Sequence record: NC_049850.1
Length of the DNA: 64,000 nt
Strand: one strand, 5' to 3'
In this document: positions 1,881 through 28,699 of the stretch, in pieces
Layout of the letters: each line of letters begins with the position of its first letter
Position numbering within the stretch: position 1 is the first letter of the stretch
Position numbers and translations under genes: made by a program
The notes under the pieces: model-generated
The model's input: the letters and a program-made list of their open reading frames with translations, nothing else
Told to the model about the DNA's origin: nothing
Database searches by the model: none

Positions 1881-1935
1881 ATCATACACGATAAATAAGC
1901 CCGTCAACAATACCCGACCTATACTCGGGGTTATT
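1881..1935. promoter_or_regulatory. 27-bp dyad (1909-1935) between a leftward TTGACG..TATGAT promoter (spacer only 15) and a probable rightward promoter (TATGAT 1958-1963)
   Basis: AATACCCGACCTATACTCGGGGTTATT; genes diverge from here. Confidence 0.6.
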
Positions 1936-1993
1936 ATGCATGCGGGCCCGCGTGTGCTATGATTCGTACATCAATCAACTAAGCGAGTCAGAC

Positions 1994-2206
1994 ATGATCC
2001 TTGCAATGGTCAACGCAGCACGTCGCCGGGGCGGTAACGCTCAGGCAGTAGTGGCGAACGCGTATGAACGCGCATGCGAGTGGGTTGCGGATTGTGGCGG
2101 CGACGTGCGGGAATGGTTCGTGTATGAGGTGCGATGCGTGACCGATTTCGACGGCGCGGATCGTGAGACGTGCGATTGGCTCGCGCAACAATTACAGGAA
2201 GTGTGA
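1994..2206 (+). CDS. hypothetical protein (70 aa)
   Basis: in-frame ATG 1994 downstream of rightward -10. Confidence 0.55.
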   Translation: MILAMVNAARRRGGNAQAVVANAYERACEWVADCGGDVREWFVYEVRCVTDFDGADRETCDWLAQQLQEV

Positions 2207-2313
2207 ATGATCGTCGTTAAGGTAGTGTTGTGTGCATGGGTCGGATACTGCGCCTGTGCGATGGCTCGCGATATCTGGCGTGAGTACATGCCGCGTCGCC
2301 CGGAGGTTTAATC

Positions 2314-2601
2314 ATGGCGCGATCAATGGTAGGAACAGCAGCGAAGGGCAAGGGCGAACCTGCACGCCCGGCCACGCCGACCGAATGGGAAGTGTTCTGT
2401 AAAGTCTGGCGCGATCACTTCGGGGATACGAGCCCGACGCGCGCCGCGTTCGACCTGTGGCAATTGTCGCGTAAGCGTGCACTCGGGCAGGCGGCGCGAC
2501 TCCATAGCCAATGGGCGGGAATGTGTCCGGCAGGATCGGGCCGCGCCTACAATCATTCGCTGTATGCGAGCGCGATTACCGACCTATACAAGGATGAATA
2601 G
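2314..2601 (+). CDS. hypothetical protein (95 aa)
   Basis: GGAGG RBS. Confidence 0.65.
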   Translation: MARSMVGTAAKGKGEPARPATPTEWEVFCKVWRDHFGDTSPTRAAFDLWQLSRKRALGQAARLHSQWAGMCPAGSGRAYNHSLYASAITDLYKDE

Positions 2602-2602
2602 C

Positions 2603-2779
2603 ATGCAGGTTAAGATACAGCCGACGACCGGGGGCCGCGTTCGTGTCGTCATCGCGAGCGGCTATCGTGCGGGCGCATTCGTGTGTCACGCCTCATCCGA
2701 TTTCCCTGTCGTCTGGCCCGACGTAGACGCGGCTAAGACATGGTGCGCGATGACGGGCTATGAGGTAGTGGCACCATGA
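2603..2779 (+). CDS. hypothetical protein (58 aa, MQVKIQ...)
   Basis: AAGGA RBS; ATGA overlap with next gene. Confidence 0.6.
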   Translation: MQVKIQPTTGGRVRVVIASGYRAGAFVCHASSDFPVVWPDVDAAKTWCAMTGYEVVAP

Positions 2780-3006
2780 CCGCGCGCCCGTCTAAGCCGG
2801 TCTCCGTCCGCGTGAAGCGGAATATCTGGGGCAATTGGAACGCGTATGAAGGCGTGCACCACGTGCGCGAGCTAGGCGTGTCCGAATTCATGGCCCGCGA
2901 ATGGCTGCACGAACGCATGTCACGCGGGGATTGCGTGCTGTCTCCATCGTCGGACGTGAACCAGACGGAGTTAGACGAGCATAGGCGGCGCGTGTACGGA
3001 TCATGA
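2776..3006 (+). CDS. hypothetical protein (76 aa), similar to N-terminus of 7290-7991
   Basis: GAGG RBS; KRNIWGNWNAYEG motif. Confidence 0.7.
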   Translation: MTARPSKPVSVRVKRNIWGNWNAYEGVHHVRELGVSEFMAREWLHERMSRGDCVLSPSSDVNQTELDEHRRRVYGS

Positions 3007-3007
3007 G

Positions 3008-3030
3008 AAAAGGGGGCCTAGGCCCCCTTT
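3008..3030. terminator. bidirectional intrinsic terminator AAAAGGGGGCC-TA-GGCCCCCTTT
   Basis: hairpin between convergent genes. Confidence 0.8.
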
Positions 3031-3048
3031 CGTTCGTCTACAAGCCCG

Positions 3049-3243
3049 CTACAGACCTATTGCGATAGCGTGTGCGGCCGCCCGCTTGTCATCGTCGCGT
3101 GTCCACACGTCCGGGCCCGTGTTGCGATAGATCGTGTTATAGGTGTCGAGCCCGAATTTATCGCCCATGTACCGGAATACGATCAATTCGCCCAGATCGC
3201 CCGCCCGTTCATACACGGGCTTTGCTTTCACCTTAGCTTGCAT
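3049..3243 (-). CDS. hypothetical protein (64 aa)
   Basis: AAGGGG RBS. Confidence 0.7.
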   Translation of the reverse strand: MQAKVKAKPVYERAGDLGELIVFRYMGDKFGLDTYNTIYRNTGPDVWTRDDDKRAAAHAIAIGL

Positions 3244-3252
3244 ATAGCCCCC

Positions 3253-3462
3253 TTATCGAGCCCATGCGGCACGGGCCCGGGCCATCACTTCCGCTTCGTC
3301 GTAACCCATGACCGGGGCAATCCCGACACGTGCGCATGCTGCACGCAACGCCTTGCGCTGTGCGCCCAGCGTGCTGCACATAGCGGGCACGACGTGCCCC
3401 GCGTTCGTGAGTGCGATGCGGGTTTGTGCAATGTTCAGCGTGTTCGTTTCGATGCGGGCCAT
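3253..3462 (-). CDS. hypothetical protein (69 aa)
   Basis: first gene after promoter 3497-3554; leader AACCCGAAGGGGAACGCC-ATG. Confidence 0.7.
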   Translation of the reverse strand: MARIETNTLNIAQTRIALTNAGHVVPAMCSTLGAQRKALRAACARVGIAPVMGYDEAEVMARARAAWAR

Positions 3463-3496
3463 GGCGTTCCCCTTCGGGTTTGTTGAACATGCCCAA

Positions 3497-3554
3497 ATGA
3501 TAAAGGCCCCGATTGGGGCCTGTCAACAATACCTTAGTGAAATGCTGGGGTTAT
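3497..3554 (-). promoter_or_regulatory. early promoter TTGACA-N18-TATCAT with palindromic spacer and upstream dyad
   Basis: spacer GGCCCCAATCGGGGCC. Confidence 0.8.
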
Positions 3555-3727
3555 ACGCGTTCGACGTATTGCCCCGAACGATAGGAGCGCGTAGAGGAAA
3601 CGCGCCCCTCGAATTCCAGATCGAACGTTACGATTCCGTTCGCGTCATAGACGAACAGGACAAGGCCCCGCGCACCGTCGATTTTCAGCGTATCGCCCGC
3701 TTGCACGTCCCGCGCTCTTACTTGCAT
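3551..3727 (-). CDS. hypothetical protein (58 aa, MQVRARDVQAGDTL..., possibly KOW/SH3-like)
   Basis: GAGGTG RBS; stop lies inside dyad; translated by hand. Confidence 0.6.
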   Translation of the reverse strand: MQVRARDVQAGDTLKIDGARGLVLFVYDANGIVTFDLEFEGRVSSTRSYRSGQYVERV

Positions 3728-3773
3728 GGTGTATCACCTCTAGGTGAATGCGGGGCCGGGCGGCCCCGCATGG

Positions 3774-4418
3774 TTAGATATACTGGCGTTGCTTGTAGCT
3801 CAGGGGGCTAGGATACTTCGGGGCCGGGTCGAGCAGCCAAGCGCGGATTTGATCGGCGCAAGACTTGCGGAACGCAGACCGGAAATTACGCGTGCGCAGC
3901 AGCGTAACGCATGCCGGGTATTGATCGCCCATCGCATCACGCAGAGCCGCCACACGTTCGACCGTGCACCCGATTTCGGCCGCAACCGCCGCATCGGCCG
4001 CCGCTTGCTCTGCTGCCTTGCGCGCTGCTTCCGATTCGCGCTGGGCTTGTGCTTCCGCCGCCCGCTTTGCTTTCCATGCTTCGTGCGCTGCGATCACATC
4101 GGGCGTTGCGTCCGGCTTCGATCCGTAGCACGGATATGACCAGCCCCGAGTCGTCGCAAAGAGAATGTCTTCGCGACAGCCCTTTTCAGGGTTCCAGACG
4201 GCCATATACCAATCGGAATCATCGTATCCGTTACGTTCGTAATCGAACAGGCAGAGACCTACATGCGACAGGCTAATGGTGCACGAACCATCCTCTTTCA
4301 GCGCGCCGCCATTGTACATATACGAGTGTGCTTCGGCCGCGTCCGGATACCACGGGGTATAGTCGCCGTCCGCGCTGTACACCTTCCCGCCCTTTGCCTC
4401 AAGATTGATGATTGCCAT
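3774..4418 (-). CDS. hypothetical protein (214 aa)
   Basis: first gene after promoter 4454-4510; GGGGAA RBS. Confidence 0.85.
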   Translation of the reverse strand: MAIINLEAKGGKVYSADGDYTPWYPDAAEAHSYMYNGGALKEDGSCTISLSHVGLCLFDYERNGYDDSDWYMAVWNPEKGCREDILFATTRGWSYPCYGSKPDATPDVIAAHEAWKAKRAAEAQAQRESEAARKAAEQAAADAAVAAEIGCTVERVAALRDAMGDQYPACVTLLRTRNFRSAFRKSCADQIRAWLLDPAPKYPSPLSYKQRQYI

Positions 4419-4453
4419 TTCGTTCCCCGTCTGGGTTTGTTGAGCATGTACAA

Positions 4454-4510
4454 ATGATAGCGGCCCCGATCGGGGCCGTCAACAATAACCCTTCACTTTA
4501 TGGGGTTATT
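4454..4510 (-). promoter_or_regulatory. early promoter TTGACG-N17-TATCAT with perfect palindrome GGCCCCGATCGGGGCC and 27-bp dyad 4484-4510
   Basis: read directly. Confidence 0.85.
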
Positions 4511-4713
4511 CAGTAGGCGAGCAGATCGCGCAGCGCGTCGCGGTTTTTCGACATATGGTCGATGATCGCGAGCCGTTCGCGTAACCCGATATTGCGGAAC
4601 GCGGGGCACCCGTCGAGCAGATCGCCCAGCAAACCGTCCCGATATTCGAGTGCCTTTTCCATGGTGTCGAATTGCTTGCCCCGCGTTACATAGACCCTCT
4701 TTTCTTCGATCAC
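4510..4713 (-). CDS. hypothetical protein (67 aa)
   Basis: GTG start with AGGGGA RBS. Confidence 0.6.
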   Translation of the reverse strand: MIEEKRVYVTRGKQFDTMEKALEYRDGLLGDLLDGCPAFRNIGLRERLAIIDHMSKNRDALRDLLAY

Positions 4714-5169: not shown

Positions 5170-5205
5170 GGTGCTGACTCCGTGCGCTGCGTTGAAAGTG
5201 ATTCC

Positions 5206-5262
5206 ATTATGGGGCGTGTTCGACGCCCCGTCAACAGTACCCGACTAAAACGCGGGGTCTTT
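5206..5262 (-). promoter_or_regulatory. early promoter TTGACG-N17-CATAAT with dyad
   Basis: spacer GGGCGT-CGAAC-ACGCCC; leader TCACTTTCAACGCA. Confidence 0.8.
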
Positions 5263-5425: not shown

Positions 5426-5500
5426 TTCGTTGTCCTGATTGATTGAGGTATGGGCTAGATTATGACGGGGCTTTCTCACCCCGTCAACACCTATTTTTGA

Positions 5501-5779: not shown

Positions 5780-5947
5780 GATGAACTCCGGTTTCTGGTT
5801 AGCGGTTCGTCGTGAACCAATGAACGTATAGTAACACGCGAAAAGGGGCGTGCGCAATACCCCTACAGAAAATAGGGTTATTGCGTCACGCCCCTTAAAC
5901 GGAGTCGTTATTCTGTGCCAGTCTAGGCCCGGCTCTTACCCGGAAAG

Positions 5948-6241
5948 TCAGCCATTTTTCGCCCCTTTCTCTACGTAATCGAGCCCTACCACGCAGCACG
6001 TCCGCGCGTCAACGATGCTATCGTCTTCGGCAAACGTGAATGCCGGGTGATCCGTATGCGGGTTGATCGTAACACCCGTAACCGTGTTGATGACTTCCCC
6101 GCCCCGGAATTTGTTGCCGCTGCGCTTGATGACGCGACGGCCGATAACTGCCGTGTAGTCGTCCGGATCGTCGCCCCATTCCGGGGTAATCTGGATTGCG
6201 CTGTACTTGCGCAGCAGCACACGTGTTTTCTTGTAGGCCAT
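5948..6241 (-). CDS. hypothetical protein (97 aa)
   Basis: AAGGGG RBS after stop of upstream gene. Confidence 0.7.
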   Translation of the reverse strand: MAYKKTRVLLRKYSAIQITPEWGDDPDDYTAVIGRRVIKRSGNKFRGGEVINTVTGVTINPHTDHPAFTFAEDDSIVDARTCCVVGLDYVEKGAKNG

Positions 6242-6250
6242 GCGCCGCCC

Positions 6251-7237: not shown

Positions 7238-7294
7238 ATTCTGGGGCCCGCGTTTCGGGCTGTCAACAATACCCGACTAAAACGCGGGGTTATT
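7238..7294 (-). promoter_or_regulatory. early promoter TTGACA-N17-CAGAAT with dyad 7268-7294
   Basis: read directly. Confidence 0.8.
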
Positions 7295-7991: not shown

Positions 7992-8081
7992 GATGCTAAC
8001 TCCGTGTGTTGTGTGTCGATGTGTGTATTCTGGGGCCTATAGTCGGCCCCGTCAACTATTCCCGAGTAAATCACTCAGGTA

Positions 8082-8297
8082 TCACATAGTGCGTTGCCGT
8101 GTGTAGAGCACGCGGTTAATGTCGTCGCGGATGCACACACGATAGGGGCCGTCGCGTTCCACTATGTAGGCCCGCCACTTGTGAATTACGATCGTCCGCG
8201 CGCATCCATAGGTAATCATCTTGTGTTCACCTTCGTCCGCGATCATTTGCGCGTCCTCTTCCGCCAGCTTGGCGGGGCCGTCGTCGTTCGTGCTCAC
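8082..8297 (-). CDS. hypothetical protein (71 aa, GTG start)
   Basis: 3' part of ORF 8082-8576; GGGGG RBS. Confidence 0.5.
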   Translation of the reverse strand: MSTNDDGPAKLAEEDAQMIADEGEHKMITYGCARTIVIHKWRAYIVERDGPYRVCIRDDINRVLYTRQRTM

Positions 8298-8308
8298 GGT
8301 CGCCCCCG

Positions 8309-9709: not shown

Positions 9710-10134
9710 TTCCCTACCCCTTACCATTCGTTGACAGTAACGATATCCTAGTCCACGCAATCCGCCACGTCAACAATAACCCCTCGTTTCAGTCGGGTTT
9801 ATTTCCGCACCGAAACCCACACAATCCGGGGTTATTCCCGTGCCCGGCTAACCACTCGCAGCACGCTACTTTCTCCATTAAAAACGCGCGCTACAGCCCC
9901 TTAAACGGGCCGCCTGTAGTTTCCCCTACCCATCAGTCAATCACGCGCACCGGGCCGCCTGAGCGCGTTCTCTGCGTCTATGCGTTCGTCAGGAATGCAG
10001 CGCAATGCGGGGCCCGGGCCCGGGCCATTGATCGGGAATCCTGACGATCCGGGCTCGCGCGATTAGATGATTCGCACTACCGACGAATGCGGTACTTGAC
10101 GCGCTGCCCCGTCTGTGCCGTGTGCGATGCCCCG

Positions 10135-10380
10135 CCCCATCCGGTTTTCGTTAGCACAACTAATCGCGCTCGTCAACTATACCCCCTCCCCCCATCCGGT
10201 TTTTAGCACCCCCTCCCCCTGCCTGTGCTAGTAAGGTATCCTCCCAAAACCCCGTTTTCGGGCCCGGGGTTTTTCGTGAAATAAACAGGGGTCTAATTCG
10301 CGTGCGTAAGGTATCCCCCGGATGCGGGGTGCGGGGCCCGGGGTTTGTGCTCGGGGAAACAGGGGGTCTAATTCGTGTGG
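10135..10380. repeat. non-coding tandem repeats (about 75-bp unit x2) and four C-tracts
   Basis: GTAAGGTATCC, GGCCCGGGGTTT and AACAGGGG(G)TCTAATTCG each occur twice about 75 bp apart; CCCCATCCGGTTTT x2. Confidence 0.75.
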
Positions 10381-10453
10381 GTGACGCGCGTATAAACGCA
10401 AAAAGGGGAACCCCTATCATGCAGGTTCCCCTATCTGGCGTGCGTGCTGCGTT

Positions 10454-10957: not shown

Positions 10958-11035
10958 GGTGCGTCCTGTGGGGCTGGGTTGTTAGTTGATGTGGTGATTA
11001 TGGGGGCGGCCCGCGCCCCCGTCAACAATACCCCT

Positions 11036-12043
11036 TCAGTGCGCTGGGTTATTCGCGACGAACGCAAGGGCCTGTGCTTCTGCGGCCTGCACGCGTTTAT
11101 ACTCGGCTTCGCTGACAGCCCGGCCCCCGATCCGGATACGCGCCGGAAACTGGTTGAAAATCTCACCCCGAACACTCGTATTGATGATGATACGCTGGTT
11201 GATTACCACGCGTTGACCGGCGGGCGTGCGGCCCGTCAACAGGAATTCGTAACCCGTGATCGATTGGAAAGCCGGGTCTTTCAGGGCCCCGGCCTTAATC
11301 ATCACCTTGTGTTCTACGCTTTCTTGTACTTGCTTTGCGTACTTTTCCGCGTGCTCGCGCATCCACTCGGCATTAATCGAGCCGTCGCCGTTCGTGCAGT
11401 GGCGCAGCACCGTATCGTAAAAACGCGACCATTCCTTGTCGTGACGAATGCCCCTGAGCACATAGCCAAACTTGGCGACGGCAGCAGCGTGGCGGGCCTT
11501 CACATAATCTTCAAACTGTGCGACGAGCGCCGGGCCCTGTGCATCGAGTGCGGCGCGCACCACTTCCGACAGGACGGGGGCGGACATGGTGCGTTCCACG
11601 TGCGCGCGTTGTGCGGTTGCGGCCCGCGTCTCGCGCTTCGCGATACGAGCTTTTGCGGCCTTCAACGCGGCTTCAACCTCAATCCATTCCGCAAACAGGT
11701 GCACGGCCGTGCGTGCGACAGCGTGTCGGCCAGCGAGTGCGACAGCCGCCCGGTGCATGCGCTTCACGCTCGGCAGGTTCGACGCATCATAATACAGGTC
11801 TTGCAATTCGTCGGGGCGCGGGAACGCGAGCGCCAGATAGGGGGCGCGCACCGCCCATTCCATCATCGTTTCATAGACGGTCGTGAGTTCCGCGCGCATT
11901 TCCTTGTAATCGACGGCGCGCATGCTATCGGTGCCGCAAAGCTGGGCGATACGCGAGTCGAACGCGTTGATAGCACGTGCATTGTGCGGACGATCCGACA
12001 GCAGAATGCGGGCGAGCGTGGCACGCGTGTTTTGCAGTTCCAT
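11036..12043 (-). CDS. hypothetical protein (335 aa, MELQNTRA...)
   Basis: GGAAGGGGAA RBS; promoter TTGACG-N17-TACTAT with dyad at 12080-12136. Confidence 0.85.
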   Translation of the reverse strand: MELQNTRATLARILLSDRPHNARAINAFDSRIAQLCGTDSMRAVDYKEMRAELTTVYETMMEWAVRAPYLALAFPRPDELQDLYYDASNLPSVKRMHRAAVALAGRHAVARTAVHLFAEWIEVEAALKAAKARIAKRETRAATAQRAHVERTMSAPVLSEVVRAALDAQGPALVAQFEDYVKARHAAAVAKFGYVLRGIRHDKEWSRFYDTVLRHCTNGDGSINAEWMREHAEKYAKQVQESVEHKVMIKAGALKDPAFQSITGYEFLLTGRTPAGQRVVINQRIIINTSVRGEIFNQFPARIRIGGRAVSEAEYKRVQAAEAQALAFVANNPAH

Positions 12044-12131
12044 GGTCTTTCCCCTTCCGGGTTCGTTGAGCATGTACAAATAGTAACAGCCCCAATCGGG
12101 GCCGTCAACAATACTTGAGTGAAGCGCGGGG

Positions 12132-12488
12132 TTATTCGCCCCGCTCGTATTCCGCGCACGCTTCGGCGTGCTCTACCGGGTGCATGCGTTCCAGTGCTTC
12201 ATCGCGTTGACCGGCCGCCAGCAGGTTTTTAAATACCCGCTTGAGTGCCGCGCTTCGCGCCTCGTCCGGATCGACAGGGGGCAGCGTTGACGCCTGAGCG
12301 TCGAATTGTGCGCGCCGCCCCCATTCACGGGCTTGCATAAGCGCCATGTCGGCTGCGCGTACCGCGTTCGGGGCTTCGGCCGTATACGACATTGCGGCGT
12401 GGCTCACGTGCCAGACCCCGGCCCGGGGCCGGAACATGAAGCCCATGGCCCGGGCTACGCGGATCATTTCATTCTGTGCGTCGGTCAT
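12132..12488 (-). CDS. hypothetical protein (118 aa)
   Basis: GAGGAA RBS; stop inside dyad. Confidence 0.75.
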   Translation of the reverse strand: MTDAQNEMIRVARAMGFMFRPRAGVWHVSHAAMSYTAEAPNAVRAADMALMQAREWGRRAQFDAQASTLPPVDPDEARSAALKRVFKNLLAAGQRDEALERMHPVEHAEACAEYERGE

Positions 12489-13038: not shown

Positions 13039-13185
13039 TTTCAAATCTCCGGTTGGTGAGAGTGTGCTACGTGGTTAAGTGGGTGTTGCGTGATTCGTTA
13101 AGACAGATTGTAGGGGACTAAATTCGCTTCGTCAACTAATCCCCTTCAATTTGTGGGGTCTTTTTCGCAGACCCCAGCGCGTTCG

Positions 13186-13437: not shown

Positions 13438-13560
13438 TTTCATTCCTTGTTTGTGACGCGTTAATCGATGAAACAGATTGTAGGGCAATCATTTTGCAGC
13501 GTCAACAATAACCCTACAATCTGCGGGGTCTTTATCGGCAGACCCCGGGGCCGGTGCGCC

Positions 13561-14160: not shown

Positions 14161-14271
14161 GATCCTAACTCCGTTTGATTTGTGTTGCGTTGTGTGAATC
14201 GATGTATGAATTATGCCCGCGTCTTTTTGGCCCGTCAACAGTACCCGAGTATTTTAGTCGGGTATTGTGAC

Positions 14272-14832: not shown

Positions 14833-14897
14833 GGTGCGCCCCTCTAGGCTTGGTGTTGCGTTGAAAGTGAGTCTATTGTATGCGGGCCCTGTCAGCA

Positions 14898-14963
14898 CGT
14901 CAACAGTACCCGAGTATTTTAGTCGGGTACTGATGCCAAAGAAAAGGGGCCTAGGCCCCTTCC
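14898..14963 (-). repeat. terminator+dyad+-35 cassette, near-identical to 17404-17470
   Basis: CGTCAACAGTACC(C/T)GAGTATTTTAGTCGGGTA..GCCAAAGAAAAGGGGCCTAGGCCCCTTCCC in both; dyad part also at 14233-14266. Confidence 0.85.
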
Positions 14964-15771: not shown

Positions 15772-15857
15772 CGTTGCACCTGTTTGGTTAGTCGATGGAC
15801 AAATAATAACGGGCCCCGAAAGGCCCGTCAACAATACCCGACTAAATCGCGTGGTCT

Positions 15858-16547
15858 TTACAGCACATCCTTAAATTCGTCGTTCAGTCGCTTACGCTGG
15901 GCGCGCAGTTTCTCAATATGGTTACGCGTTTCTTCGCGCCAGATACCGGGGGCATTGCGCACGATCCAAAGGTCGCGCACACGCTGTTCCGTTTCTTCGA
16001 TATCGGATTCGAGCCGTCGGGCCGCTTGCCATTTCGCGTCGTATTCCCGTTCGTCTTCCGCGTAGACGCACGCATGCGAATCGGCGTCCGCTGCGGCAGC
16101 GCGGTCACTGTCATAGACAGTCGTGAACACGACGTGTCCATCGTTGTCTGACGTGGTGTAACCCGCGAGATAACGGCCGTGCGTCAGGCGCACAAAGAAC
16201 GGACGCGCTACCTCCGTCCCGTCTTCGTCCGTGAACCATCCTTTGTGGCTGGCGTAATTGCGTCCCGAGCGCGGGTTTTCCGTTTCGTCCAGATAACACA
16301 CGCGGCCGGGCAGCGCGTCATCGTCAAACGTCGAATAGATATCGATATTGCGGCCGTATTCCGTGTTGTAGCCCGCGCTCAGGCCCGAGTCGTTCGACAG
16401 GAAATTTCCGAACCGGGCCGAACGCCAATCGATGAGTCGGCCGCCCTTCCCCGCGTTCACCTTGGCATTGTGGGATTCCACGTAGTCGCGAAGGTATGCG
16501 AGCCGCTTCGGTGCGCCAATGCGAAGGTTGCGATAGGTCGTGTTCAT
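15858..16547 (-). CDS. hypothetical protein (229 aa) with C-terminal coiled coil
   Basis: promoter TTGACG-N16-TACAAT with dyad at 16593-16648. Confidence 0.8.
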   Translation of the reverse strand: MNTTYRNLRIGAPKRLAYLRDYVESHNAKVNAGKGGRLIDWRSARFGNFLSNDSGLSAGYNTEYGRNIDIYSTFDDDALPGRVCYLDETENPRSGRNYASHKGWFTDEDGTEVARPFFVRLTHGRYLAGYTTSDNDGHVVFTTVYDSDRAAAADADSHACVYAEDEREYDAKWQAARRLESDIEETEQRVRDLWIVRNAPGIWREETRNHIEKLRAQRKRLNDEFKDVL

Positions 16548-16681
16548 AATCGAATCCGTTTAGTTAATCCCGCGTCGCGCGGTATGAAAAGGATTGTACG
16601 CGTCTTATTCCCTGCGTCAACAATAACCCCGCGCAATGAGGGGTTATTGTTGAAGCACTCCGTAGAGTGCGGGCCACGCCC

Positions 16682-17348: not shown

Positions 17349-17443
17349 GATGTGCCCCGTTAGGCGTTGTCGATGTGTGAAGTATGCCCGGGCCCGTGAG
17401 GCGCGTCAACAGTACCTGAGTATTTTAGTCGGGTATTGGTGCC

Positions 17444-17518
17444 AAAGAAAAGGGGCCTAGGCCCCTTCCCTGTCACTTCCTGCCCGTACCGCTTGCGCGG
17501 GGCGGTCTCACGCCATAC
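17444..17518 (-). ncRNA. candidate small RNA (~75 nt)
   Basis: TTGACA-N17-TACAAT promoter (17525-17553), then CCGC-GCAA-GCGG hairpin and a terminator; only ORF is Met-Ala-stop. Confidence 0.5.
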
Positions 17519-17563
17519 ACTCCCATTGTAGCATAGGCCGCCGCCCCTGTCAAGCCCCGTCCC

Positions 17564-18625: not shown

Positions 18626-18913
18626 TTAAGCCGGTTCGTAATCCATCGAAAACCCGATGATATCGGACGCGAGCAGGACGCGCCGCGTGTTCACGCGATC
18701 CGTGATCGTGTTCCGCTGTCGCGGGTCGGGATTGCTGACGACGACGTTACGGCATTCGTAGAGGATAAACAGCCCGTCTGCGGCATCCGCTTCCGTAGTG
18801 TCGTCGGTGCCTGTCAGGCTGTGTCCGGACGACAGGTGAACGGTTACAACGGCCCCCTCCGGGATACGTGCGATAACCGGATTCGGAATCGTTTCAAGGG
18901 TGATAGCGGTCAT
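18626..18913 (-). CDS. hypothetical protein (95 aa, MTAITLE...)
   Basis: GGAGGA RBS. Confidence 0.7.
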   Translation of the reverse strand: MTAITLETIPNPVIARIPEGAVVTVHLSSGHSLTGTDDTTEADAADGLFILYECRNVVVSNPDPRQRNTITDRVNTRRVLLASDIIGFSMDYEPA

Positions 18914-19318
18914 GGTCTGTTCCTCCCCATTACGCGAGTTTGCCGCGTGCGTCGTGCTTCTCACGGCGTGCCTTGCGTCGCGCCTGTTCACGCGTGCGCA
19001 CCGCGTCGGCATCGCGTGCCGGGGCTTTGCGCGAGATACGTTCGAAATGTGCGTTGCCTTGCATTTGCATGATGGTTCCCTTAGAGAAGGTTTGTTAAGT
19101 AAGTGTGTGTATCATACCGGGTTTAATTTCGTCCGTCAATTAAACCCGTACTAAAATTAGGCTTTTATGCTGCCTGCATGCCGCGCACTTGCCGGATTGC
19201 ATCGCGCACTTGCTCACGTGCGAACGGGAACCGGCGCAGGTTGCGCAGACCGTAATTGATGCCGATAAATTCGATTGCCGTTTCGATATCGCGGAAGGTC
19301 TTCATAGTGAACTCCAAA

Positions 19319-19762: not shown

Positions 19763-19856
19763 GGTTGCCTCTAGGCGGTTAGTGCTGCGTTGAAAGTGAT
19801 GCTATTGTATGCGGCCCGTTCTAGAGCCGTCAACAATAACCCACTAATTCGAGGGG

Positions 19857-20138
19857 TTATTCTTCGACCCACAAGCTAGGATCGCACGACGTTTCAATCC
19901 GGAAGTGCGACGCATCGCGATAACGGCGCACAAACAGGCGGCCGTGCTGCGCGTAGGTCATGCCTTCAGTCAGCCATGAAACATGGTGCAAATCGCCCGG
20001 CATCGGGGATTTGAGCGGCCCTGCGTGCGTGACACGAACGGGCGTGAATTCGTCAGGGAACAGCCGCGCATCGTAGCGCGTGCGCCGATAGTAGAGGGTC
20101 TTACCATCCACGTAATCCTGAAAGCATGCGGGTTTCAT
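19857..20138 (-). CDS. hypothetical protein (93 aa)
   Basis: AAGGGG RBS; stop inside dyad. Confidence 0.7.
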   Translation of the reverse strand: MKPACFQDYVDGKTLYYRRTRYDARLFPDEFTPVRVTHAGPLKSPMPGDLHHVSWLTEGMTYAQHGRLFVRRYRDASHFRIETSCDPSLWVEE

Positions 20139-20298: not shown

Positions 20299-20334
20299 TT
20301 CGTTCCCCTTCGGGTTCGTTGAATCGATGGACAA

Positions 20335-20392
20335 ATAGTAACAGCCCCTTAGAGGGGCCGTCAACAATAACCACAAATAATTTGTGGTTATT
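20335..20392 (-). promoter_or_regulatory. early promoter TTGACG-N18-TACTAT with near-perfect 27-bp dyad AATAACCACAAA-TAA-TTTGTGGTTATT
   Basis: read directly. Confidence 0.85.
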
Positions 20393-21832: not shown

Positions 21833-21929
21833 GGTCAGCCCCTTTAGGCCGGTCTTTACTGCGTTGAAAGTGATTCTATTCTATGGGGCCTGCTGCCCCG
21901 TGTCAACAATAACCCCAGACTTTACTGGG

Positions 21930-22286
21930 TTATTCGTTGTCCATCATCCCGAGCCGGGCCCGGATCATTGACAGGCGTTCCGATACGGGCACGGCACGGC
22001 CGCCGCCCAGACGAACCCATCCCGCGCCAGACGGGCACGCGTCAATGTCATGCACCCCGGAATAAGCGGCGCAAATGTCGGCCGCACTGTTAGCCTGTAG
22101 CAGCGTATAACCGGCCGTGCGCGCGTGCTGCGCAGCATCCCGGCCTGACTCCCACACGCGAGCATGCGCCCGGCCCGTCTTCTGTTCACCCTCCCCTACA
22201 AACTGCGCGGGGCCCTGCGCGACGACACGCAGACGATAGCGCGTCGCGCCTTCGTGTTTCTGACGCATCACATACACTTGTTGCAT
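21930..22286 (-). CDS. hypothetical protein (118 aa)
   Basis: promoter TTGACG-N17-CATACT at 22322-22378; terminator 22384-22412 upstream. Confidence 0.7.
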   Translation of the reverse strand: MQQVYVMRQKHEGATRYRLRVVAQGPAQFVGEGEQKTGRAHARVWESGRDAAQHARTAGYTLLQANSAADICAAYSGVHDIDACPSGAGWVRLGGGRAVPVSERLSMIRARLGMMDNE

Positions 22287-22428
22287 ACCCTTAAAACTCC
22301 CGTTCGTGAATCGATGAGTGCAGTATGTGCGCGTGTGCCCGTACCGTCAACAGTACCAGACTAATTAACTCAGGTATTAGGGCAAAAGAAAAGGGCCCCT
22401 AGGGGCCCTTTTGCGAGTGCGCGACGGA

Positions 22429-22836: not shown

Positions 22837-22956
22837 GGTGTTTACTCTGCTGTTTGGTTAAGGTGTTACCAGTATAGAGGGGAGAATTCCCCGCGTCAAG
22901 AATAACCCCATATAGTATAGGGCTATTTTTGACGGGGCCCGAAAGGGCCCGGGCCG

Positions 22957-23346: not shown

Positions 23347-23433
23347 TCGTTTGATTCCTTATTCGTTCAGAGAGATTACATTGTGCCGGGTAGTGTTCTC
23401 TCTGTCAACAATACCCGAGTGCGGCGCGGGGTC

Positions 23434-23808
23434 TTACTTCGTCAACGCGCCCGACAGGCTTTTGACGCATGCGCCGTAAGCGGGCTCGCGTGCATCGTCG
23501 GGGCTCGCGCCCTTGAATGCGGGGCTGCTGTAAATCAGGGCCGCGTTACCCTTCATCAGATCGACAAGCGGACGCGCGACGCCCGCAAACGTGCGTTCGA
23601 TATCGGCCTGCGTTTCCGCGAGCGTCACCCCGCTATCACGTGCGCGAACCGACAAAACCGCAACGTCAGCAACGCCGTTACACGTCTGCGAAATGTTCGC
23701 CTTTTCTTCCGCCGTGAGCGGCGCAGCCTGCGCCGGAACCCCAGCCCCGCACGATGCGGCAGTCGCGAGCGCAGCGAACGCGACTGCGGAAACGGTACGT
23801 TTGAACAT
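23434..23808 (-). CDS. exported protein with Sec-type signal peptide (124 aa)
   Basis: MFKR + hydrophobic core + A-x-A; GGAG RBS; promoter 23848-23905. Confidence 0.7.
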   Translation of the reverse strand: MFKRTVSAVAFAALATAASCGAGVPAQAAPLTAEEKANISQTCNGVADVAVLSVRARDSGVTLAETQADIERTFAGVARPLVDLMKGNAALIYSSPAFKGASPDDAREPAYGACVKSLSGALTK

Positions 23809-23889
23809 GCTTGATTCTCCGGTTATGCGTCTGTTGAAAGTGAGTCTATTGTATGCGGGCCCGTGTAGGCCCGTCAACAATAAACCCCT

Positions 23890-24246
23890 TTACCGTAGGG
23901 TCTTCGCGATCCGACGCGCCCAGCGTCGAGCATAGCCCGCGCGTCGGCATCCGTGCGGATGAGTCGGCCCCGTGCCCTGCCCAAGACAATACAGATAGGC
24001 GCGAAGGGCTGCATTGATGCTTTCCGGGGTTGCACCCAGTTCACGCGCAAGGTTTTTGCGCCTCAGCCTGAGCAACGCCATAAGGCTGTCTGCCTCATAC
24101 GTGTAACGTTCGTGTTTCAGGCCCGCATGCGCCATGATGCACGAATCGATTGAGACACGGGAGCGCGGTTGCATGGCGGCGGCCCAGCCCGGAACCGGGG
24201 CCTTTCTTTGTCGCCAATATTCGGCGTGTTCACCTGTCACGATCAT
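23890..24246 (-). CDS. hypothetical protein (118 aa)
   Basis: ATGA overlap with upstream stop. Confidence 0.6.
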   Translation of the reverse strand: MIVTGEHAEYWRQRKAPVPGWAAAMQPRSRVSIDSCIMAHAGLKHERYTYEADSLMALLRLRRKNLARELGATPESINAALRAYLYCLGQGTGPTHPHGCRRAGYARRWARRIAKTLR

Positions 24247-24539: not shown

Positions 24540-24626
24540 CTTCGTTCCCCTTCGGGTTCGTTGAGCGTGAAACCAGTATAGACGGGCACGCGGCACACGT
24601 CAACAATAACCCCGTGCTCTATAGGG

Positions 24627-25049
24627 TTAAATCAAAATCATTTCCGTGTAACCCAGCGTCCGGGCAATTGCCAGCAGCGCATCATTCCCCGCGCCCTGTT
24701 CGCACGACTCAAACGCGATTGGTGCGCCCGCGTCGTCGCGAATCTCGATACCTGCCGACACTAGGGCCCGGTCGAACGCGAGCCCGAACGATTCACGTCC
24801 CGCGCTTGTCTTCGCCACGCCGTAACCCGACGTGGTAGCGGCCCCGCAACGAACCCACAGCGACGCGTAGAGGTTCGTTGCGGACGTGCTGCGCGATGCC
24901 CAGTAACGCAATTCGCACACGTGTTCAAGCTTACCCGTTACCGGGTTAAGGGCAACGAGGGAAACGGTGCGGATGCGTTCCTTCGTCCCGTCGTGCTGCT
25001 GCGCGTTATCCTGTTCACCCTTAAACGTTACTTGCATACGTTGCCTCAT
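24627..25049 (-). CDS. hypothetical protein (140 aa)
   Basis: ATGA overlap. Confidence 0.7.
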   Translation of the reverse strand: MRQRMQVTFKGEQDNAQQHDGTKERIRTVSLVALNPVTGKLEHVCELRYWASRSTSATNLYASLWVRCGAATTSGYGVAKTSAGRESFGLAFDRALVSAGIEIRDDAGAPIAFESCEQGAGNDALLAIARTLGYTEMILI

Positions 25050-25549: not shown

Positions 25550-25819
25550 TTGGTGCCCCTTTAGGCGTCGTGATTGGATGACTGAATTATGCGCGGGCCC
25601 GTCTGGCGTGTCAACAATAACCCCAAAATTTTTATGGGTATTCAGGCAAAGAAAAAGCCCCGGCTGGGGCTTATAGGATGCGGGCCGCCTGTATGGCCGC
25701 CGCTCGCGTTCTGGCCGTCCCGTGAGACTGGCCCCGCACGTCGAAAATTTCCCATAGGCGACGGTCGCCTACGCGCTGAACATAGCCGCGCAGCGTTCCC
25801 CGCTCGTCATAAACGGGAG

Positions 25820-26497
25820 TCACGACCCGCGCTCGTCTAGCACTTCCGCCGCTTGCGTAATCGACAGGTTCGGCACGCCGTCAACCGTCCACGCTTCGAC
25901 TGTCTGCCCGGCAACGCGCGACAGTCTTACGGTTACTTCGATGCCGCGCAACCGGCCCGAGCGCGATGCCCCGGCCGCCGCCGCTACGTCGGCCTTTTCC
26001 GCGAAGCGATCGACCAGCGATTCTGCAAAATCGACCAGTTCACGGGCCGCCGCGAGCGGGATAGCCTTATGCGGTTGCGGGGCCGCGACGCGCGCAACCT
26101 CGTTTTCGGCGTCGCGTTGATGGATGAACGCGCCCCGACCGTCAACATACCAGTTACAGACAATCCAATCACGGGCCCGCGAATAGATCGCGCAGCACGT
26201 GACAGGCACGCCCCCGATATCTGCGGTTTCCGCGTGGTCGTCCTTCGACGTGCGGGCAATCTCGCGCGCGTCTTCCGCGAGTTTCGACACTTCGGCCGAA
26301 ATTTGATCGATGGTCATTACTTGTCCGTTCAACATGGTTTCGAATTCCATTTCATTTTCGAGAAAATACAGTTCGGGGGTGCCCGCGATAAGATGCCGGG
26401 CCGCCCGCGCTTGCTCGGCAGGCCATTCCGGATTATCGGGGAATGCGCGCCGGGCCCGGGCTAGTTCGATCCGCAAGTGTAGCGCGAGCGGTGACAT
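25820..26497 (-). CDS. multi-domain hypothetical protein (225 aa)
   Basis: TAATG overlap with upstream stop. Confidence 0.65.
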   Translation of the reverse strand: MSPLALHLRIELARARRAFPDNPEWPAEQARAARHLIAGTPELYFLENEMEFETMLNGQVMTIDQISAEVSKLAEDAREIARTSKDDHAETADIGGVPVTCCAIYSRARDWIVCNWYVDGRGAFIHQRDAENEVARVAAPQPHKAIPLAAARELVDFAESLVDRFAEKADVAAAAGASRSGRLRGIEVTVRLSRVAGQTVEAWTVDGVPNLSITQAAEVLDERGS

Positions 26498-26982
26498 TAT
26501 GCGACGAGCCGCTTAACGGGTTCAACGCTGCGCGGGTGATAAACCCGGCGCAGTTCAGCCAGCAAGGGCGCGTATTCTTCCGGGGTTGCCAGCTTCAAAT
26601 CGCGGCCCAGACTGCGCGACACTTCCCCATGCTGCCCCGTGTGCATGTAGGACATCACGTTACCCGGGTTGCAGTCTTTCGCGCTGTTACAGAAAAACGC
26701 GATTACGTAACCCTCGCGAAACTTGCGGAACACGACACGCAACGCGGGCGGCGCAAACTTCGCGGCCCCGTAGCGCTGCGCGTCTTCGGACAGGGCGCGC
26801 ACTCCCGAGGGGTCATGTGCATCCCGCGAGCCGTGAACGTCGACCAGATCGCCGCTGCGCTTATCGAATTGAAACGTGATCGGAACGCGGGGGCCAAACC
26901 CGGGCCATTTGCGCGCGAACGCTTCAACGTCTGCGGTCGTGCACTGCACGGTAAAGAATGCCCCATTATCGTATGCTCGCAT
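26497..26982 (-). CDS. two-domain hypothetical protein (161 aa) with SYMHTGQH...ATPEEYAPLLAEL motif
   Basis: GAGG RBS; promoter 27024-27080. Confidence 0.8.
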   Translation of the reverse strand: MRAYDNGAFFTVQCTTADVEAFARKWPGFGPRVPITFQFDKRSGDLVDVHGSRDAHDPSGVRALSEDAQRYGAAKFAPPALRVVFRKFREGYVIAFFCNSAKDCNPGNVMSYMHTGQHGEVSRSLGRDLKLATPEEYAPLLAELRRVYHPRSVEPVKRLVA

Positions 26983-27078
26983 GGTTGCCTCTAGGCTGTT
27001 AGTGCTGCGTTGAAAGTGAAACCAGTATAGGACTGGGCCGCCGCCCCGTCAACAATACCCGACTAAATCGCGGGGTCT

Positions 27079-27450
27079 TTATTCCGTGCCACGCAAGCGA
27101 CGCACAATTTCCGCGTGCGAAAGACCCGACATAAGGCGGTCAATTTCCGCTTGCTCGTCTGCCTGCCGTCGCTCGTCTTCTGCTGCCTGCCTAGCGAGTT
27201 CTGCGCGCCACTCTTTCAGGGCCCGCGCGCCCTTTTCCGTAGTGCGCGGATCAACCGACAGATAGAGCGTGACTTCGCGCCCCTCCCGGTCAACGAAAAC
27301 GGGCGTGCCGCTATTTTTCACCACTACCGTGAAATGCGACTGAACCAGACGGTTTACGGTGTCGGCATCGATAGCACCGCCAAACGATCCGCCCACAACC
27401 TTACGCGTGTTGTCGCTGTAGAGACGCGTGTGATAGCTGATATTGCGCAT
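27079..27450 (-). CDS. hypothetical protein (123 aa)
   Basis: promoter TTGACG-N17-CATACT with dyad at 27484-27540. Confidence 0.75.
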   Translation of the reverse strand: MRNISYHTRLYSDNTRKVVGGSFGGAIDADTVNRLVQSHFTVVVKNSGTPVFVDREGREVTLYLSVDPRTTEKGARALKEWRAELARQAAEDERRQADEQAEIDRLMSGLSHAEIVRRLRGTE

Positions 27451-27527
27451 GTCAAACCCTGTAGGTGCGTTGAAAGTGATACCAGTATGGGGGCGGGCCG
27501 CCGCCCCGTCAACAATACCCGAGTAAA

Positions 27528-27872
27528 TTAATCGGGTTTGTCGTCCTGCACTTGTGCGCCCGGCCGCGCCAGCTTTTCCAGCTTGGCAAGCAACGAAACC
27601 GCGTCCTTAACGTAGCAGGTGCACGCGGGCCGCTTCGCCTCATACTCGGCCACTGCCTGAGCATGCGCCGCCCGGTCTCCGTCCTTCACACGGCCGCCCG
27701 GCCCGCGCTTAGGGCCGCCCCCGAAAATCTGTTGAGCGTGTCGGTTGTGAACGGCAACCGCGCAGCTATAGGCGTGCATCGGATGCCGGATAACCGGGCC
27801 AAAGATCGCGAGCACGTCCCGCGCTAAATCGGCTTGCCCGTCGTCGTATGCTTGATTGTATGCGTCTTGCAT
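27528..27872 (-). CDS. hypothetical protein (114 aa)
   Basis: AAGGGG RBS. Confidence 0.65.
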   Translation of the reverse strand: MQDAYNQAYDDGQADLARDVLAIFGPVIRHPMHAYSCAVAVHNRHAQQIFGGGPKRGPGGRVKDGDRAAHAQAVAEYEAKRPACTCYVKDAVSLLAKLEKLARPGAQVQDDKPD

Positions 27873-27881
27873 GATGCCCCC

Positions 27882-28202
27882 TTATGCGCGGTATATGGAA
27901 ACGAAACCGGGCGTGCGGTCGCGGTCGTCGGCCGCGATGCCGATATGGTAGGCCCCGCGCGCCCCCTCTTTCATACCCTCGCCCACAGCAGCGGACACGG
28001 CGCGACGCGTGATACCGTTATCGATGCGTGCATGCGTGCAACCGTGCGCGACTACCGCGTATTGTACGGCGCGGGCCGCCAGCCAAGCGGCCGGGTGATT
28101 GCCGCTAATCTCGTACAGCAGACGGCCCCGGTACGTGACGCGTGCGGCACGGCCCCCGCGTGTGCCGTGCATTTCGTAGGTTTCAATGGTTGCGGTTTTC
28201 AT
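27882..28202 (-). CDS. hypothetical protein (106 aa), first gene of the leftward early arm
   Basis: AGGGG RBS; TTGTGC-N18-TATAAT promoter 28238-28267. Confidence 0.7.
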   Translation of the reverse strand: MKTATIETYEMHGTRGGRAARVTYRGRLLYEISGNHPAAWLAARAVQYAVVAHGCTHARIDNGITRRAVSAAVGEGMKEGARGAYHIGIAADDRDRTPGFVSIYRA

Positions 28203-28293
28203 GATGCGCCCCTATCGGTTTTGGTTTGGATGCACGCATTATATACAGGCGACGGGTGCGCGCACAATACCCCTAAAAAGTTTTTGGTTTTTG

Positions 28294-28699
28294 TTGACGC
28301 GGGCCCGGAACCGTGTAGAATGGGAACCGGTGAGCAACACGGGCAAACGCAGCCGCGACGCGGTGGGGAACCCGGAGCCCGGCCCCTGCCCGGTCGCGCA
28401 AACGTTTGCGCACGATGCACGGAATACCCGACAAAAACGCTAGGGTACTATTGACGCGACCGCGAATAGGGCGCACAATTCGATTCATGGTGAACGCGAC
28501 GCGGACACCGAACCCGGCCGATTCGGCCAATGTCGAAAAAAGTGAAAAAACTTGTTGACATGCTGCAAATCCGGGTTCATAATGCTTTCCATGGTGACGC
28601 GACAGCGACGCCCCAGCCCCGGACACGGGGTCATCCCGGGGCCCGCGACAGCGACACCCGCGAAAATCGCTTGACGTGCAGGGCCGGGGCCGCTATAGT
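28294..28699 (+). promoter_or_regulatory. four tandem rightward sigma70-type promoters
   Basis: TTGACG-16-TAGAAT (28294-28321), TTGACG-17-CACAAT (28451-28479, dyad 28423-28449), TTGACA-17-CATAAT (28555-28583), TTGACG-17-TATAGT (28671-28699). Confidence 0.75.

Follow-up and report, generated by a model that had tools for sequence, protein, structure and literature searches.

Burkholderia phage BcepSaruman (NC_049850.1; MK552140.1) is a jumbo myophage of B. cenocepacia with a genome of 263,735 bp that encodes 446 proteins, and belongs to the genus Sarumanvirus. The sequence analysed here, referred to as the window, comprises bases 1-64,000 of this genome, and its left arm carries a repeated 27-bp dyad immediately upstream of sigma-70-like promoters, which is the subject of this report. 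Genes 013-069 (3049-28202) are located on the minus strand, are small and are annotated as 'hypothetical proteins'. Nowhere in the BcepSaruman genome is a phage RNA polymerase, a sigma factor or a transcription regulator annotated. Judged by the tail sheath, the closest relatives are BcepSauron (99%), RSL1 (64%), BCSR5 (58%) and Motura (52%); a 2026 preprint (10.64898/2026.10.21.760668) added phiMatilda to the group and placed the group far from the nucleus-forming phiKZ-like phages. The left arm is rich in ORFans: its 65 proteins gave Pfam matches only to DUF7447 and, weakly and non-significantly, to HTH_Crp_2 (E = 0.0066), all of their PHROG matches are to function-unknown families, and Rfam and tRNA scans of the arm delivered nothing above threshold. 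Because of the consensus sigma-70 promoters and the lack of an annotated phage RNA polymerase, we infer that the left arm is 'early'; use of its promoters by the host polymerase is likewise presumed.

The dyad forms the 5' part of a standard cassette for expression, about 120 bp long, which occurs in about 30 copies, usually one per small gene. When the sites are aligned on their -35 and -10 boxes, the dyad occupies positions -63 to -37 and is followed by a G at -36 and by TTGACR. The spacer of 17 nt is GC-rich and often forms a palindrome or hairpin (e.g. GGCCCCGATCGGGGCC), the -10 box reads TAnnnT or CATAAT, and 5 nt later comes a conserved CA, where transcription is expected to start, 7 nt past the -10 box. 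A leader poor in G and rich in A and C (CATCGATTCAAC, CACTTTCAACGC) then precedes a Shine-Dalgarno sequence GGGG or GGAG and the ATG. The arrangement TTGACR-N17-TAnnnT is found at about 28 dyads, and between 12 and 29 kb 29 sigma-70-like promoters were observed versus 6.2 expected. The distance from the dyad to the ATG is variable (61-105 nt), unlike the length of the dyad itself (27+/-1 bp), and the spacing to the -35 box is fixed, the dyad abutting a sigma-70-type -35. The dyads of the left arm are listed below with their strand, promoter boxes and downstream gene.

1909-1935 (minus): dyad AATAACCCCGAGTATAGGTCGGGTATT common to divergent promoters; -35 TTGACG at 1902-1907, -10 at 1881-1886, gene 007. 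The plus-strand promoter of gene 008 has an extended -10, TGc-TATGAT at 1955-1963, which compensates for the missing consensus -35.
3528-3554 (minus): dyad; -35 TTGACA at 3521-3526, -10 at 3497-3502, gene 014; spacer hairpin GGCCCCAATCGGGGCC.
4484-4510 (minus): dyad; -35 at 4477-4482, -10 at 4454-4459, gene 016; gene 017 has its stop codon adjoining the distal arm.
5236-5262 (minus): dyad with distal arm of the AAAGACC type; -35 at 5229-5234, -10 at 5206-5211, gene 019.
5856-5882 (minus): dyad inside a longer GC-rich palindrome (GGGGCGTGACGC...GCGCACGCCCC plus TTTTCG); promoter without consensus -35 and with extended -10 TGt-TACTAT, gene 021.
7268-7294 (minus): dyad; -35 at 7261-7266, -10 at 7238-7243, gene 025.
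8057-8083 (minus): dyad variant GATACCTGAG...CTCGGGAATA; -35 at 8050-8055, -10 at 8027-8032, gene 026.
9775-9801 (minus): dyad, 29 bp when measured by its arms (9775-9803); -35 at 9768-9773, -10 at 9745-9750, gene 032.
10178-10204 (minus): weak dyad-like sequence adjoining TTGACG, with no clear -10; doubtful member.
11027-11053 (minus): dyad; -35 at 11020-11025, -10 at 10997-11002, gene 034.
12110-12136 (minus): dyad with degenerate proximal arm; -35 at 12103-12108, -10 at 12080-12085, gene 035; replacement junction with BcepSauron at 12113.
13137-13163 (minus): dyad; -35 at 13130-13135, -10 at 13107-13112, gene 037.
13507-13533 (minus): dyad; -35 at 13500-13505, -10 at 13477-13482, gene 038.
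14240-14266 (minus): dyad AATACCCGACTAAAATACTCGGGTACT, preceded by a canonical terminator (GGGGCCTATGGGCCCC plus TTCTTTTTG); gene 039.
14905-14931 (minus): dyad after a canonical terminator; gene 040; junction of the extra BcepSauron gene module at 14892-14908.
15833-15859 (minus): dyad; -35 at 15826-15831, -10 at 15803-15808, gene 041; spacer hairpin of -16.4 kcal/mol.
16622-16648 (minus): dyad AATAACCCC-N9-GGGGTTATT; -35 at 16615-16620, -10 at 16593-16598, gene 042.
17411-17437 (minus): dyad after a canonical terminator; gene 044.
19141-19167 (minus): weak dyad TAAAAGCC...GGGTTTA; -35 at 19134-19139, -10 at 19111-19116, gene 048.
19835-19861 (minus): dyad; -35 at 19828-19833, -10 at 19804-19809, gene 050.
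20366-20392 (minus): perfect palindrome with 13-bp arms; -35 at 20359-20364, -10 at 20335-20340, gene 052; spacer hairpin of -17 kcal/mol.
21908-21934 (minus): dyad; -35 at 21901-21906, -10 at 21878-21883, gene 056.
22352-22378 (minus): dyad after a canonical terminator; gene 057.
22901-22927 (minus): dyad flanked by TTGACG on both sides (22894-22899 on the minus, 22929-22934 on the plus strand), with a -10 on the minus side only (22871-22876); gene 058.
23410-23436 (minus): dyad; -35 at 23403-23408, -10 at 23380-23385, gene 059.
23879-23905 (minus): dyad; -35 at 23872-23877, -10 at 23848-23853, gene 060.
24605-24631 (minus): dyad; -35 at 24598-24603, -10 at 24575-24580, gene 062.
25616-25642 (minus): dyad after a canonical terminator (GCCCCAGCCGGGGC plus TTTTTCTTTG); gene 064.
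27054-27080 (minus): dyad; -35 at 27047-27052, -10 at 27024-27029, gene 066.
27514-27540 (minus): dyad; -35 at 27507-27512, -10 at 27484-27489, gene 067.
28266-28292 (no single strand): dyad between divergent promoters; plus-strand promoter with TTGACG at 28294-28299 and TAGAAT ending at 28321; minus-strand promoter without consensus -35, TATAAT at 28238-28243, gene 069; replacement junction with BcepSauron at 28254.
28423-28449 (plus): dyad; -35 TTGACG at 28451-28456, -10 ending at 28479; no annotated gene 3' of it.

A preliminary description of this DNA had named 16 positions for the element, and all 16 carry a dyad of the form it gave. The promoter unit that it outlined stands as well, most sites being read on the minus strand (genes 013-069) and those at 28266 and 28423 on the plus strand. 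Its statement that nearly every unit begins with a dyad is about right, the promoters at 5487 and 17553 being without one. Single dyads are located between divergent promoters at 1909 and 28266, as it had reported, the second promoter of each pair having no consensus -35. The length constraint it claimed and an enrichment over chance were both borne out: the strict two-arm pattern AATANCCC-N{9,15}-GGGNTATT, which permits 25-31 bp, has seven matches (0.00 expected), all of them with N11 and thus 27 bp long, and the dyad combined with the promoter has nine (0.00 expected). The length of 29 bp given for the dyad at 9775 is also correct. Distal-arm candidates 5' of a proximal arm occur only at a spacing of 26-28 bp, in BcepSaruman and BcepSauron alike. 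A position weight matrix (PWM) built from the clear sites and applied with a threshold of 10 to the whole genome delivered 32 sites, about 30 of them firm and two (10178 and 19141) weak, all within 1,902-28,457. Outside the left arm there were only two matches, with scores of 10.8-11.9, compared with 14-49 inside it.

About half of the sites have the stop codon of the upstream gene, usually TAA, within or at the distal arm AATAA. This stop codon was considered as the cause of the conservation of this arm and rejected, the arm being equally conserved where the stop codon sits elsewhere. Five cassettes (14240, 14905, 17411, 22352 and 25616) have a canonical terminator (GGGGCCTAGGCCCC plus TTTTCTTTG) 5-14 nt 5' of the dyad, and in about ten others the spacer forms a hairpin of -12 to -17 kcal/mol, behind which the T-rich -10 region lies; the two groups barely overlap. 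Dyad type, spacer type and leader type re-assort among the cassettes, which therefore form mosaic subfamilies. Elsewhere in BcepSaruman, on the minus strand at 243-262 kb, sigma-70-like promoters occur every 4-5 kb, share an CATCGATTAA leader and head multi-gene operons. The dyad is absent at these promoters, for example at 245547, 255311 and 262082 and also at about 259.8 kb, and therefore marks the left-arm units and is not required by the promoter type. The promoters without a consensus -35 (5856, 28266 minus and 1909 plus) were not accepted as a sign of activation, the extended -10 (TGn) that two of them possess being a sufficient explanation. The grammar of the cassette also suggests that the annotated start codons at 1940, 20334 and 26949 are wrongly placed; the probable starts are the in-frame ATG at 1994 for gene 008, a position near 20300 for gene 052, matching the BcepSauron annotation, and 26982 for gene 066, again as in BcepSauron.

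Conservation within the dyad is concentrated in the arms (A1 A2. A4. C6 C7 and G21 G22. T24 A25. T27, with 1.0-2.0 bits per position). The centre is low in information and contains 64% A+T versus about 41% for the window, columns 13-16 being nearly always A/T. Two palindrome archetypes are present, AATAACCCC-N9-GGGGTTATT and AATACCCGACT-N5-AGTCGGGTATT, and frequent hybrids of a left and a right half stay at 27 bp. Between BcepSaruman and BcepSauron the substitutions per site amount to 0.01 in the -35 box, 0.02 in the -10 box and 0.03-0.04 in the dyad arms, and to 0.06-0.07, about twice the arm rate, in centre, spacer and leader; the counts behind these values are small, with 6-8 changes per arm class.

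As an RNA hairpin the dyad is mostly weak. The 7-nt arms are perfectly complementary in 9 of the 47 distinct dyads of BcepSaruman and BcepSauron, and the folded 27-mers have a median of about -7 kcal/mol, 5 of 32 being weaker than -2 kcal/mol; the dyad at 17411 reaches -2.6 kcal/mol, and some fold well, such as those at 20366 (-11.5), 22901 (-12.1) and 14905 (-12.5 kcal/mol). A permissive terminator scan was passed by only 2 of about 31 dyads (1909 and 21908), while spacer hairpins and separate terminators pass it; the features of an intrinsic terminator, a GC-rich stem of at least 5 bp, a loop of 3-8 nt and a U-rich tail, are likewise combined in these two dyads only. Covariation in the centre (columns 10-13) did not exceed that of right halves shuffled among the sites (p = 0.15-0.41), and columns 8-9 covary only via the two archetypes. 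In a tally of the pair table, mismatches of the G.U type and of the A.C type are about equally frequent (29 vs 30), and selection acting on the transcribed strand is therefore not indicated. Compensatory changes are single cases, such as a double change from T-A to C-G at 22901 between BcepSaruman and BcepSauron. On present evidence the dyad is mostly not a terminator hairpin.

The preliminary description recognized the element from no described system. This was wrong: the cassette matches the promoter/stem-loop cassettes of T4-like phages, the PeSLs (promoter-early stem-loops), known from RB49/phi1, PST/T4 and nt-1/KVP40 (Arbiol et al. 2010, PMC2839356; Comeau et al. 2014, PMC4122927), and appears PeSL-like in every feature that can be tested computationally. 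In PeSLs an upstream stop codon in an AT-rich region is followed by a near-consensus sigma-70 promoter, a stem-loop, a Shine-Dalgarno sequence and a start codon, with the stem-loop placed upstream of the -35, within the spacer or across the -10 box (PMC2839356, PMC4122927). The stem-loops of PST and nt-1 are located directly 5' of the promoter and have A-rich and T-rich flanks (A3-4G3-loop-C3T3-4 in nt-1), and one stem-loop of RB49 terminated as well as rrnB T1 (PMC2839356, PMC4122927). PeSLs are further described as having AT-rich DNA upstream of the -35 (PMC2839356) and as clustering in ORFan-rich hyperplastic regions, at indels between sister phages (PMC2839356, PMC4122927). Effective termination by the stem-loop and mini-circles excised through recombination of flanking cassettes are counted among their traits too. 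BcepSaruman shares with them repeated units of about 100 bp, one per ORFan, in a hyperplastic region and with near-consensus sigma-70 promoters; the upstream stop codon, which in PeSLs lies in an AT-rich stretch and here, in about half of the cases, within or at the distal arm; sequences able to form stem-loops, namely the dyad in all cassettes and spacer hairpins of -12 kcal/mol or stronger in about ten; and the location of units at indel or replacement junctions between relatives, here in three of six events between BcepSaruman and BcepSauron.

BcepSaruman differs in being an RSL1-like jumbo phage of a GC-rich betaproteobacterium and not T4-like, and in having two palindromic modules, a weak, AT-flanked dyad of fixed length and a GC-rich spacer hairpin or separate terminator. 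As far as computation goes, its upstream dyad does not resemble an effective terminator, whereas the spacer hairpins do. What appears to be new relative to the PeSLs is thus the extra conserved dyad of fixed length, distinct from the terminator-like hairpins. Descriptions of promoter/stem-loop cassettes that drive shuffling were found for T4-like phages only, and the cassettes reported here add an unrelated jumbo-phage lineage with a GC-rich host. This extension is backed by comparison, with exchange junctions at the cassette and a shuffled gene order in a related contig (L290, below). The cassette grammar is also of practical use, as it predicts transcription starts, corrects several annotated starts and offers graded, compact promoters for Burkholderia.

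The left arms of BcepSaruman and BcepSauron differ by six indels or replacements; in three of these a junction falls on the proximal arm or -35 box, and the invariant block formed by arm and box (GGGTATTGTTGACG) is the site of gene-module exchange between the two phages. At 14892-14908 BcepSauron has an extra module consisting of promoter, gene 041 and dyad, and BcepSaruman a single chimeric cassette with the crossover in GTTGACG and spacer. At 12113 gene 036 has been replaced together with its dyad, the junction lying at the proximal arm and -35 box, and at 28254 the replaced segment extends from the spacer to gene 069, with the junction just past the dyad. The 11-bp centre of the dyad at 5856-5882 is inverted (TATTTTCTGTA, versus TACAGAAAATA at 5932-5958 in BcepSauron); a longer inverted repeat, rich in GC, encloses this dyad, and the loop has therefore been flipped via recombination of the arms. 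Close by, at 5918-5950 on the minus strand, BcepSaruman retains only a remnant of 10 codons (ATGGCTGACTTTCCGGGTAAGAGCCGGGCCTAG) of a gene that BcepSauron has in full (gene 022, about 330 bp), a deletion that was not mediated by a cassette.

Several further elements encode a homologue of gene 016. A related phage contig of 95.9 kb, L290 (ENA ERZ27257060 k141_817683), contains one with 71% identity. At least 11 left-arm genes have homologues there, in a different order and each behind a promoter cassette of its own, in an array with one promoter per gene (1-20645). In at least 13 of these cassettes the module abutting the -35 is AAAAAGTCTAAAAAAGT, which consists of two A-tracts one turn apart, is non-palindromic and contains the upstream TAA. 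One cassette, at 18703-18729, has a 27-bp dyad (AATACCCACAAAATTTAGTCGGGTATT), and a 27-bp copy with an identical right half (TTTAGTCGGGTATT) is kept in L290 and in unrelated metagenome contigs. L290 also has a second promoter class with GGTCTG immediately 5' of TATAAT. A contig of 4.6 kb (L295) encodes a gene 016 homologue with 67% identity and has dyads of the type AATACCTGAC...GTCAGG. Two plasmid-like contigs (L293, Logan SRR28250616; L294, JGI 3300009709) encode two KorA proteins, ParA, ParB, DUF4942 and a gene 016 homologue; their promoter arrays read TTGACG-N17-CATAAT...CATCGACAACGC, with the leader as in the phage, and stand behind another fixed module, CGTTACAnGT-A. This looks like a promoter chassis common to phages and plasmids of probable Burkholderiales. 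Contigs of freshwater-lake phages with 40-49% GC (L137, L144, L148, L156 and others) carry arrays of ACCCT-loop-AGGGT plus yTTTG plus TTGACA-N17-TATAAT, one unit per small open reading frame (ORF), with variable loop length and with no protein similarity to BcepSaruman; a few of these units are exactly 27-bp AATACCCC-N11-GGGTTATT-G-TTGACA. The slot 5' of the -35 thus holds a module that is highly uniform within an element and different between elements, a pattern that fits element-specific recognition and also a concerted evolution of a generic AT-rich slot.

Other searches delivered no further carriers. In IMG/VR neither a 14-mer nor the full two-arm pattern retrieved anything other than BcepSauron and chance matches, and the proteins of gene 035 in metagenomes and of gene 026 in IMG/VR gave no new relatives. 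The first 50 kb of RSL1 and 100 of the 227 kb of Burkholderia phage BCSR5 contain no dyads and hardly any strong promoters of the sigma-70-like kind, and blastn of the cassette against 50,697 phage records gave no match outside Sarumanvirus. A degenerate pattern applied to bacterial genomes had at least 120 matches, mostly classical terminators and one conserved Bacillaceae sequence; no Burkholderia record was among the 80 of these that were listed, a result uninformative on a host operator.

The reading that we place first, with a probability of about 0.35, is that the dyad is a putative operator-like element with two half-sites that acts as DNA and not as an RNA terminator. The ranking continues with a UP-like or architectural role, and an attenuating hairpin and a passive cassette boundary share the last place. 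In the operator-like reading a putative dimeric protein of the phage or the host would bind the half-sites at a fixed distance from the -35; the bound dimer would touch or occlude RNA polymerase at the alpha C-terminal domain or sigma region 4, and the left-arm promoters would be switched as one regulon, apart from the dyad-less sigma-70-type promoters of the phage. A role at the DNA level is favoured because the arms are conserved, the centre is variable, the length is fixed, the hairpins are weak and covariation is lacking; because arm pairing is imperfect, G.U and A.C mismatches are equally frequent and few dyads pass the terminator scan; because the dyad is present at the divergent pairs 1909 and 28266, where no upstream transcript arrives and there is nothing to terminate, and absent from the other sigma-70-like promoters; and because the 27-bp copy is kept in L290 and metagenome contigs and the arms change more slowly than centre, spacer and leader. 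Inverted half-sites, their fixed spacing and a fixed position relative to the promoter, as in a dimeric operator, are all found, and the operator-like reading would explain why the element is a palindrome with base-specific arms and fixed spacing, why it is tied to promoters and why it is restricted to one regulon. The operator or UP interpretation of the preliminary description is partly upheld, in that the element appears to be read as DNA and is tied to promoters.

Several points weigh against an operator. No cognate regulator was found among the 65 left-arm proteins by Pfam or in the genome annotation, the remaining proteome and the host not having been profile-searched. The left-arm promoters, being close to consensus, can do without an activator, the distal arm occurs in several forms (AATAACC, AATACCC, AAAGACC) in addition to the two archetypes and their hybrids, and the substitution counts given above are small. 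L290 carries its non-palindromic A-tract module at the position of the dyad in front of homologous, shuffled genes, and the role could therefore be a generic one, or the uniformity of the cassettes could result from their concerted evolution. A functional resemblance exists to the class I operators of KorB in RK2/IncP, palindromes abutting the -35 at many promoters, where the dimer contacts RNA polymerase and switches a regulon, and to the p4 site of phage phi29, 5'-CTTTTT-15 bp-AAAATG-3', with A/T-rich arms. These share with the dyad a palindrome at a fixed place 5' of the -35, and the p4 site is also 27 bp long, but no KorB-like or p4-like protein was identified in BcepSaruman and there is no sequence similarity. 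Only tentatively do we propose the wider view that the dyad is the operator of a putative dimeric DNA-binding protein, whether an ORFan, a virion-delivered protein or a Burkholderia host factor, which would switch some 30 early promoters of the host polymerase jointly, and that related phages swap the module (27-bp dyad, A-tract repeat or CGTTACAnGT) on the same promoter and leader chassis. If true, the dyad as operator would reveal a global early regulon of phages in whose group no transcription factor is known, and the swapped modules would amount to a plug-in system of regulons that serves mobile elements of Burkholderiales.

UP elements, as in rrnB P1 and the early promoters of T4, are A/T-rich and located at -38 to -60, 5' of strong near-consensus early promoters, with A-tracts in a proximal (-46 to -38) and a distal subsite (-57 to -47). 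The dyad resembles them in location (-37 to -63), A/T-richness and near-consensus promoters, and it is conceivable, if rather unlikely, that its A/T blocks near -39, -50 and -61, about one helical turn apart and with CCC/GGG between them, favour contacts of the alpha C-terminal domain or wrapping of the DNA. Recruitment at the early promoters would then be raised in a setting of 59-67% GC with no need for a dedicated regulator. The A+T content of the centre and its columns 13-16 agrees with this, as do the homologous cassettes of L290, whose two phased A-tracts abut the -35 and match the proximal UP consensus, reportedly AAAAAARNR (Estrem et al. 1999), and the AT-rich region of PeSLs (PMC2839356). 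The dyad differs, however, in being palindromic, which alpha binding does not need, and in having blocks of CCC/GGG and TpA steps where UP elements have A-tracts: the sequence is rich in G at the proximal subsite (about -46 to -41), C6, C7, G21, G22 and the TpA step are among the bases conserved best, and the conserved CC/GG blocks are left unexplained. The other sigma-70-like promoters of BcepSaruman manage without it.

That the dyad is an attenuator or insulator, the classical role of a PeSL, we consider improbable. It would fold in the upstream transcript and, with its U-rich tail UUAUUGUU, partly terminate or stabilise the RNA, so that read-through would not accumulate along 30 co-directional units and upstream transcripts would end in the tail TTATTGTT. 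Its skeleton AAnAnCC...GGnTnTT, an inverted repeat with A-rich and T-rich flanks, is that of a bidirectional intrinsic terminator (A-tract, GC stem, loop, T-tract), which the degenerate-pattern scan mostly retrieved; the stem-loops of PST and nt-1 lie 5' of the -35 and one of RB49 terminated no less well than rrnB T1 (PMC2839356, PMC4122927), the freshwater arrays combine ACCCT-loop-AGGGT with yTTTG and TTGACA, and some dyads (20366, 22901, 14905) fold well, that at 22901 with a compensatory change. Against this, stems have 2-5 G-C pairs, loops 9-13 nt and broken T-tracts (TTATT or TACT), arms are often unpaired, 29 of about 31 dyads fail the permissive scan, and centre covariation and an excess of G.U-type mismatches are lacking. 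A hairpin needs no fixed length, as the variable freshwater loops illustrate, and has no incoming transcript at 1909 and 28266. Five cassettes have a true terminator and about ten a strong spacer hairpin, and the dyad is therefore redundant as a terminator there. Just as doubtful is a dyad with no function of its own, which would be the inherited 5' edge of a duplicated cassette, homogenised by recombination or gene conversion and important only as shared homology for the shuffling of modules. The uniformity of cassettes within a genome and their difference between relatives even at homologous genes, the mosaic subfamilies, the exchange junctions at the conserved block and the loop inversion at 5856, which shows that the arms recombine, agree with such a boundary. 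Conservation is, however, bimodal, high in both arms and low in the centre, unlike hitch-hiking outward from the -35; the 27 bp are kept despite substitution-saturated centres and indel-bearing leaders, and the arms evolve more slowly than spacer or leader.

Four known site types were compared with the dyad and dropped. An integron attC-like site has the core GTTRRRY, which GTTGACG does not match, and no integrase is annotated. LysR-type T-N11-A and CatR-type AGACC-N5-GGTAT boxes have similar half-sites with the wrong spacing, consensus sites for Fis or IHF gave no match by eye, and hairpin promoters of the N4 type have a different hairpin form, a sigma-70 promoter being present here.

Some neighbouring features of the left arm are recorded in addition. 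The unannotated gap of 740 bp at 9710-10453, which holds the doubtful site at 10178, has repeated G-runs (GGGGGAGGGGG, CCGGATGGGG). At 17440-17553 on the minus strand a strong promoter, TTGACA-N17-TGc-TACAAT (17553-17525), is followed after about 75-80 nt by the canonical terminator preceding the dyad at 17411, and a short, unannotated transcript with no ORF is predicted here. On the plus strand, 28294-28760 comprises four tandem sigma-70-like promoters (first hexamers at 28294, 28451, 28555 and 28671), each with about 100 nt behind it that contain no annotated ORF; CATGGTGA(A/C)...GCGAC is common to at least two of these stretches, the first has a looser GGTGAGC...CGCGACGCGG, and they may be small RNA genes. 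Further along the same strand, at 28990-29400, about 19 tandem copies of the A/T palindrome yCAAAAAsTTTTGr with a period of about 19-20 bp are located in an unannotated AT-rich gap (28203-29497) before a GIY-YIG gene; TRF reported five copies at 29259-29355. The array looks iteron-like, such as an origin, a partition site or a protein-binding array, and its motif is identical to the centre of the dyad at 28266, CTAAAAAGTTTTTGG.

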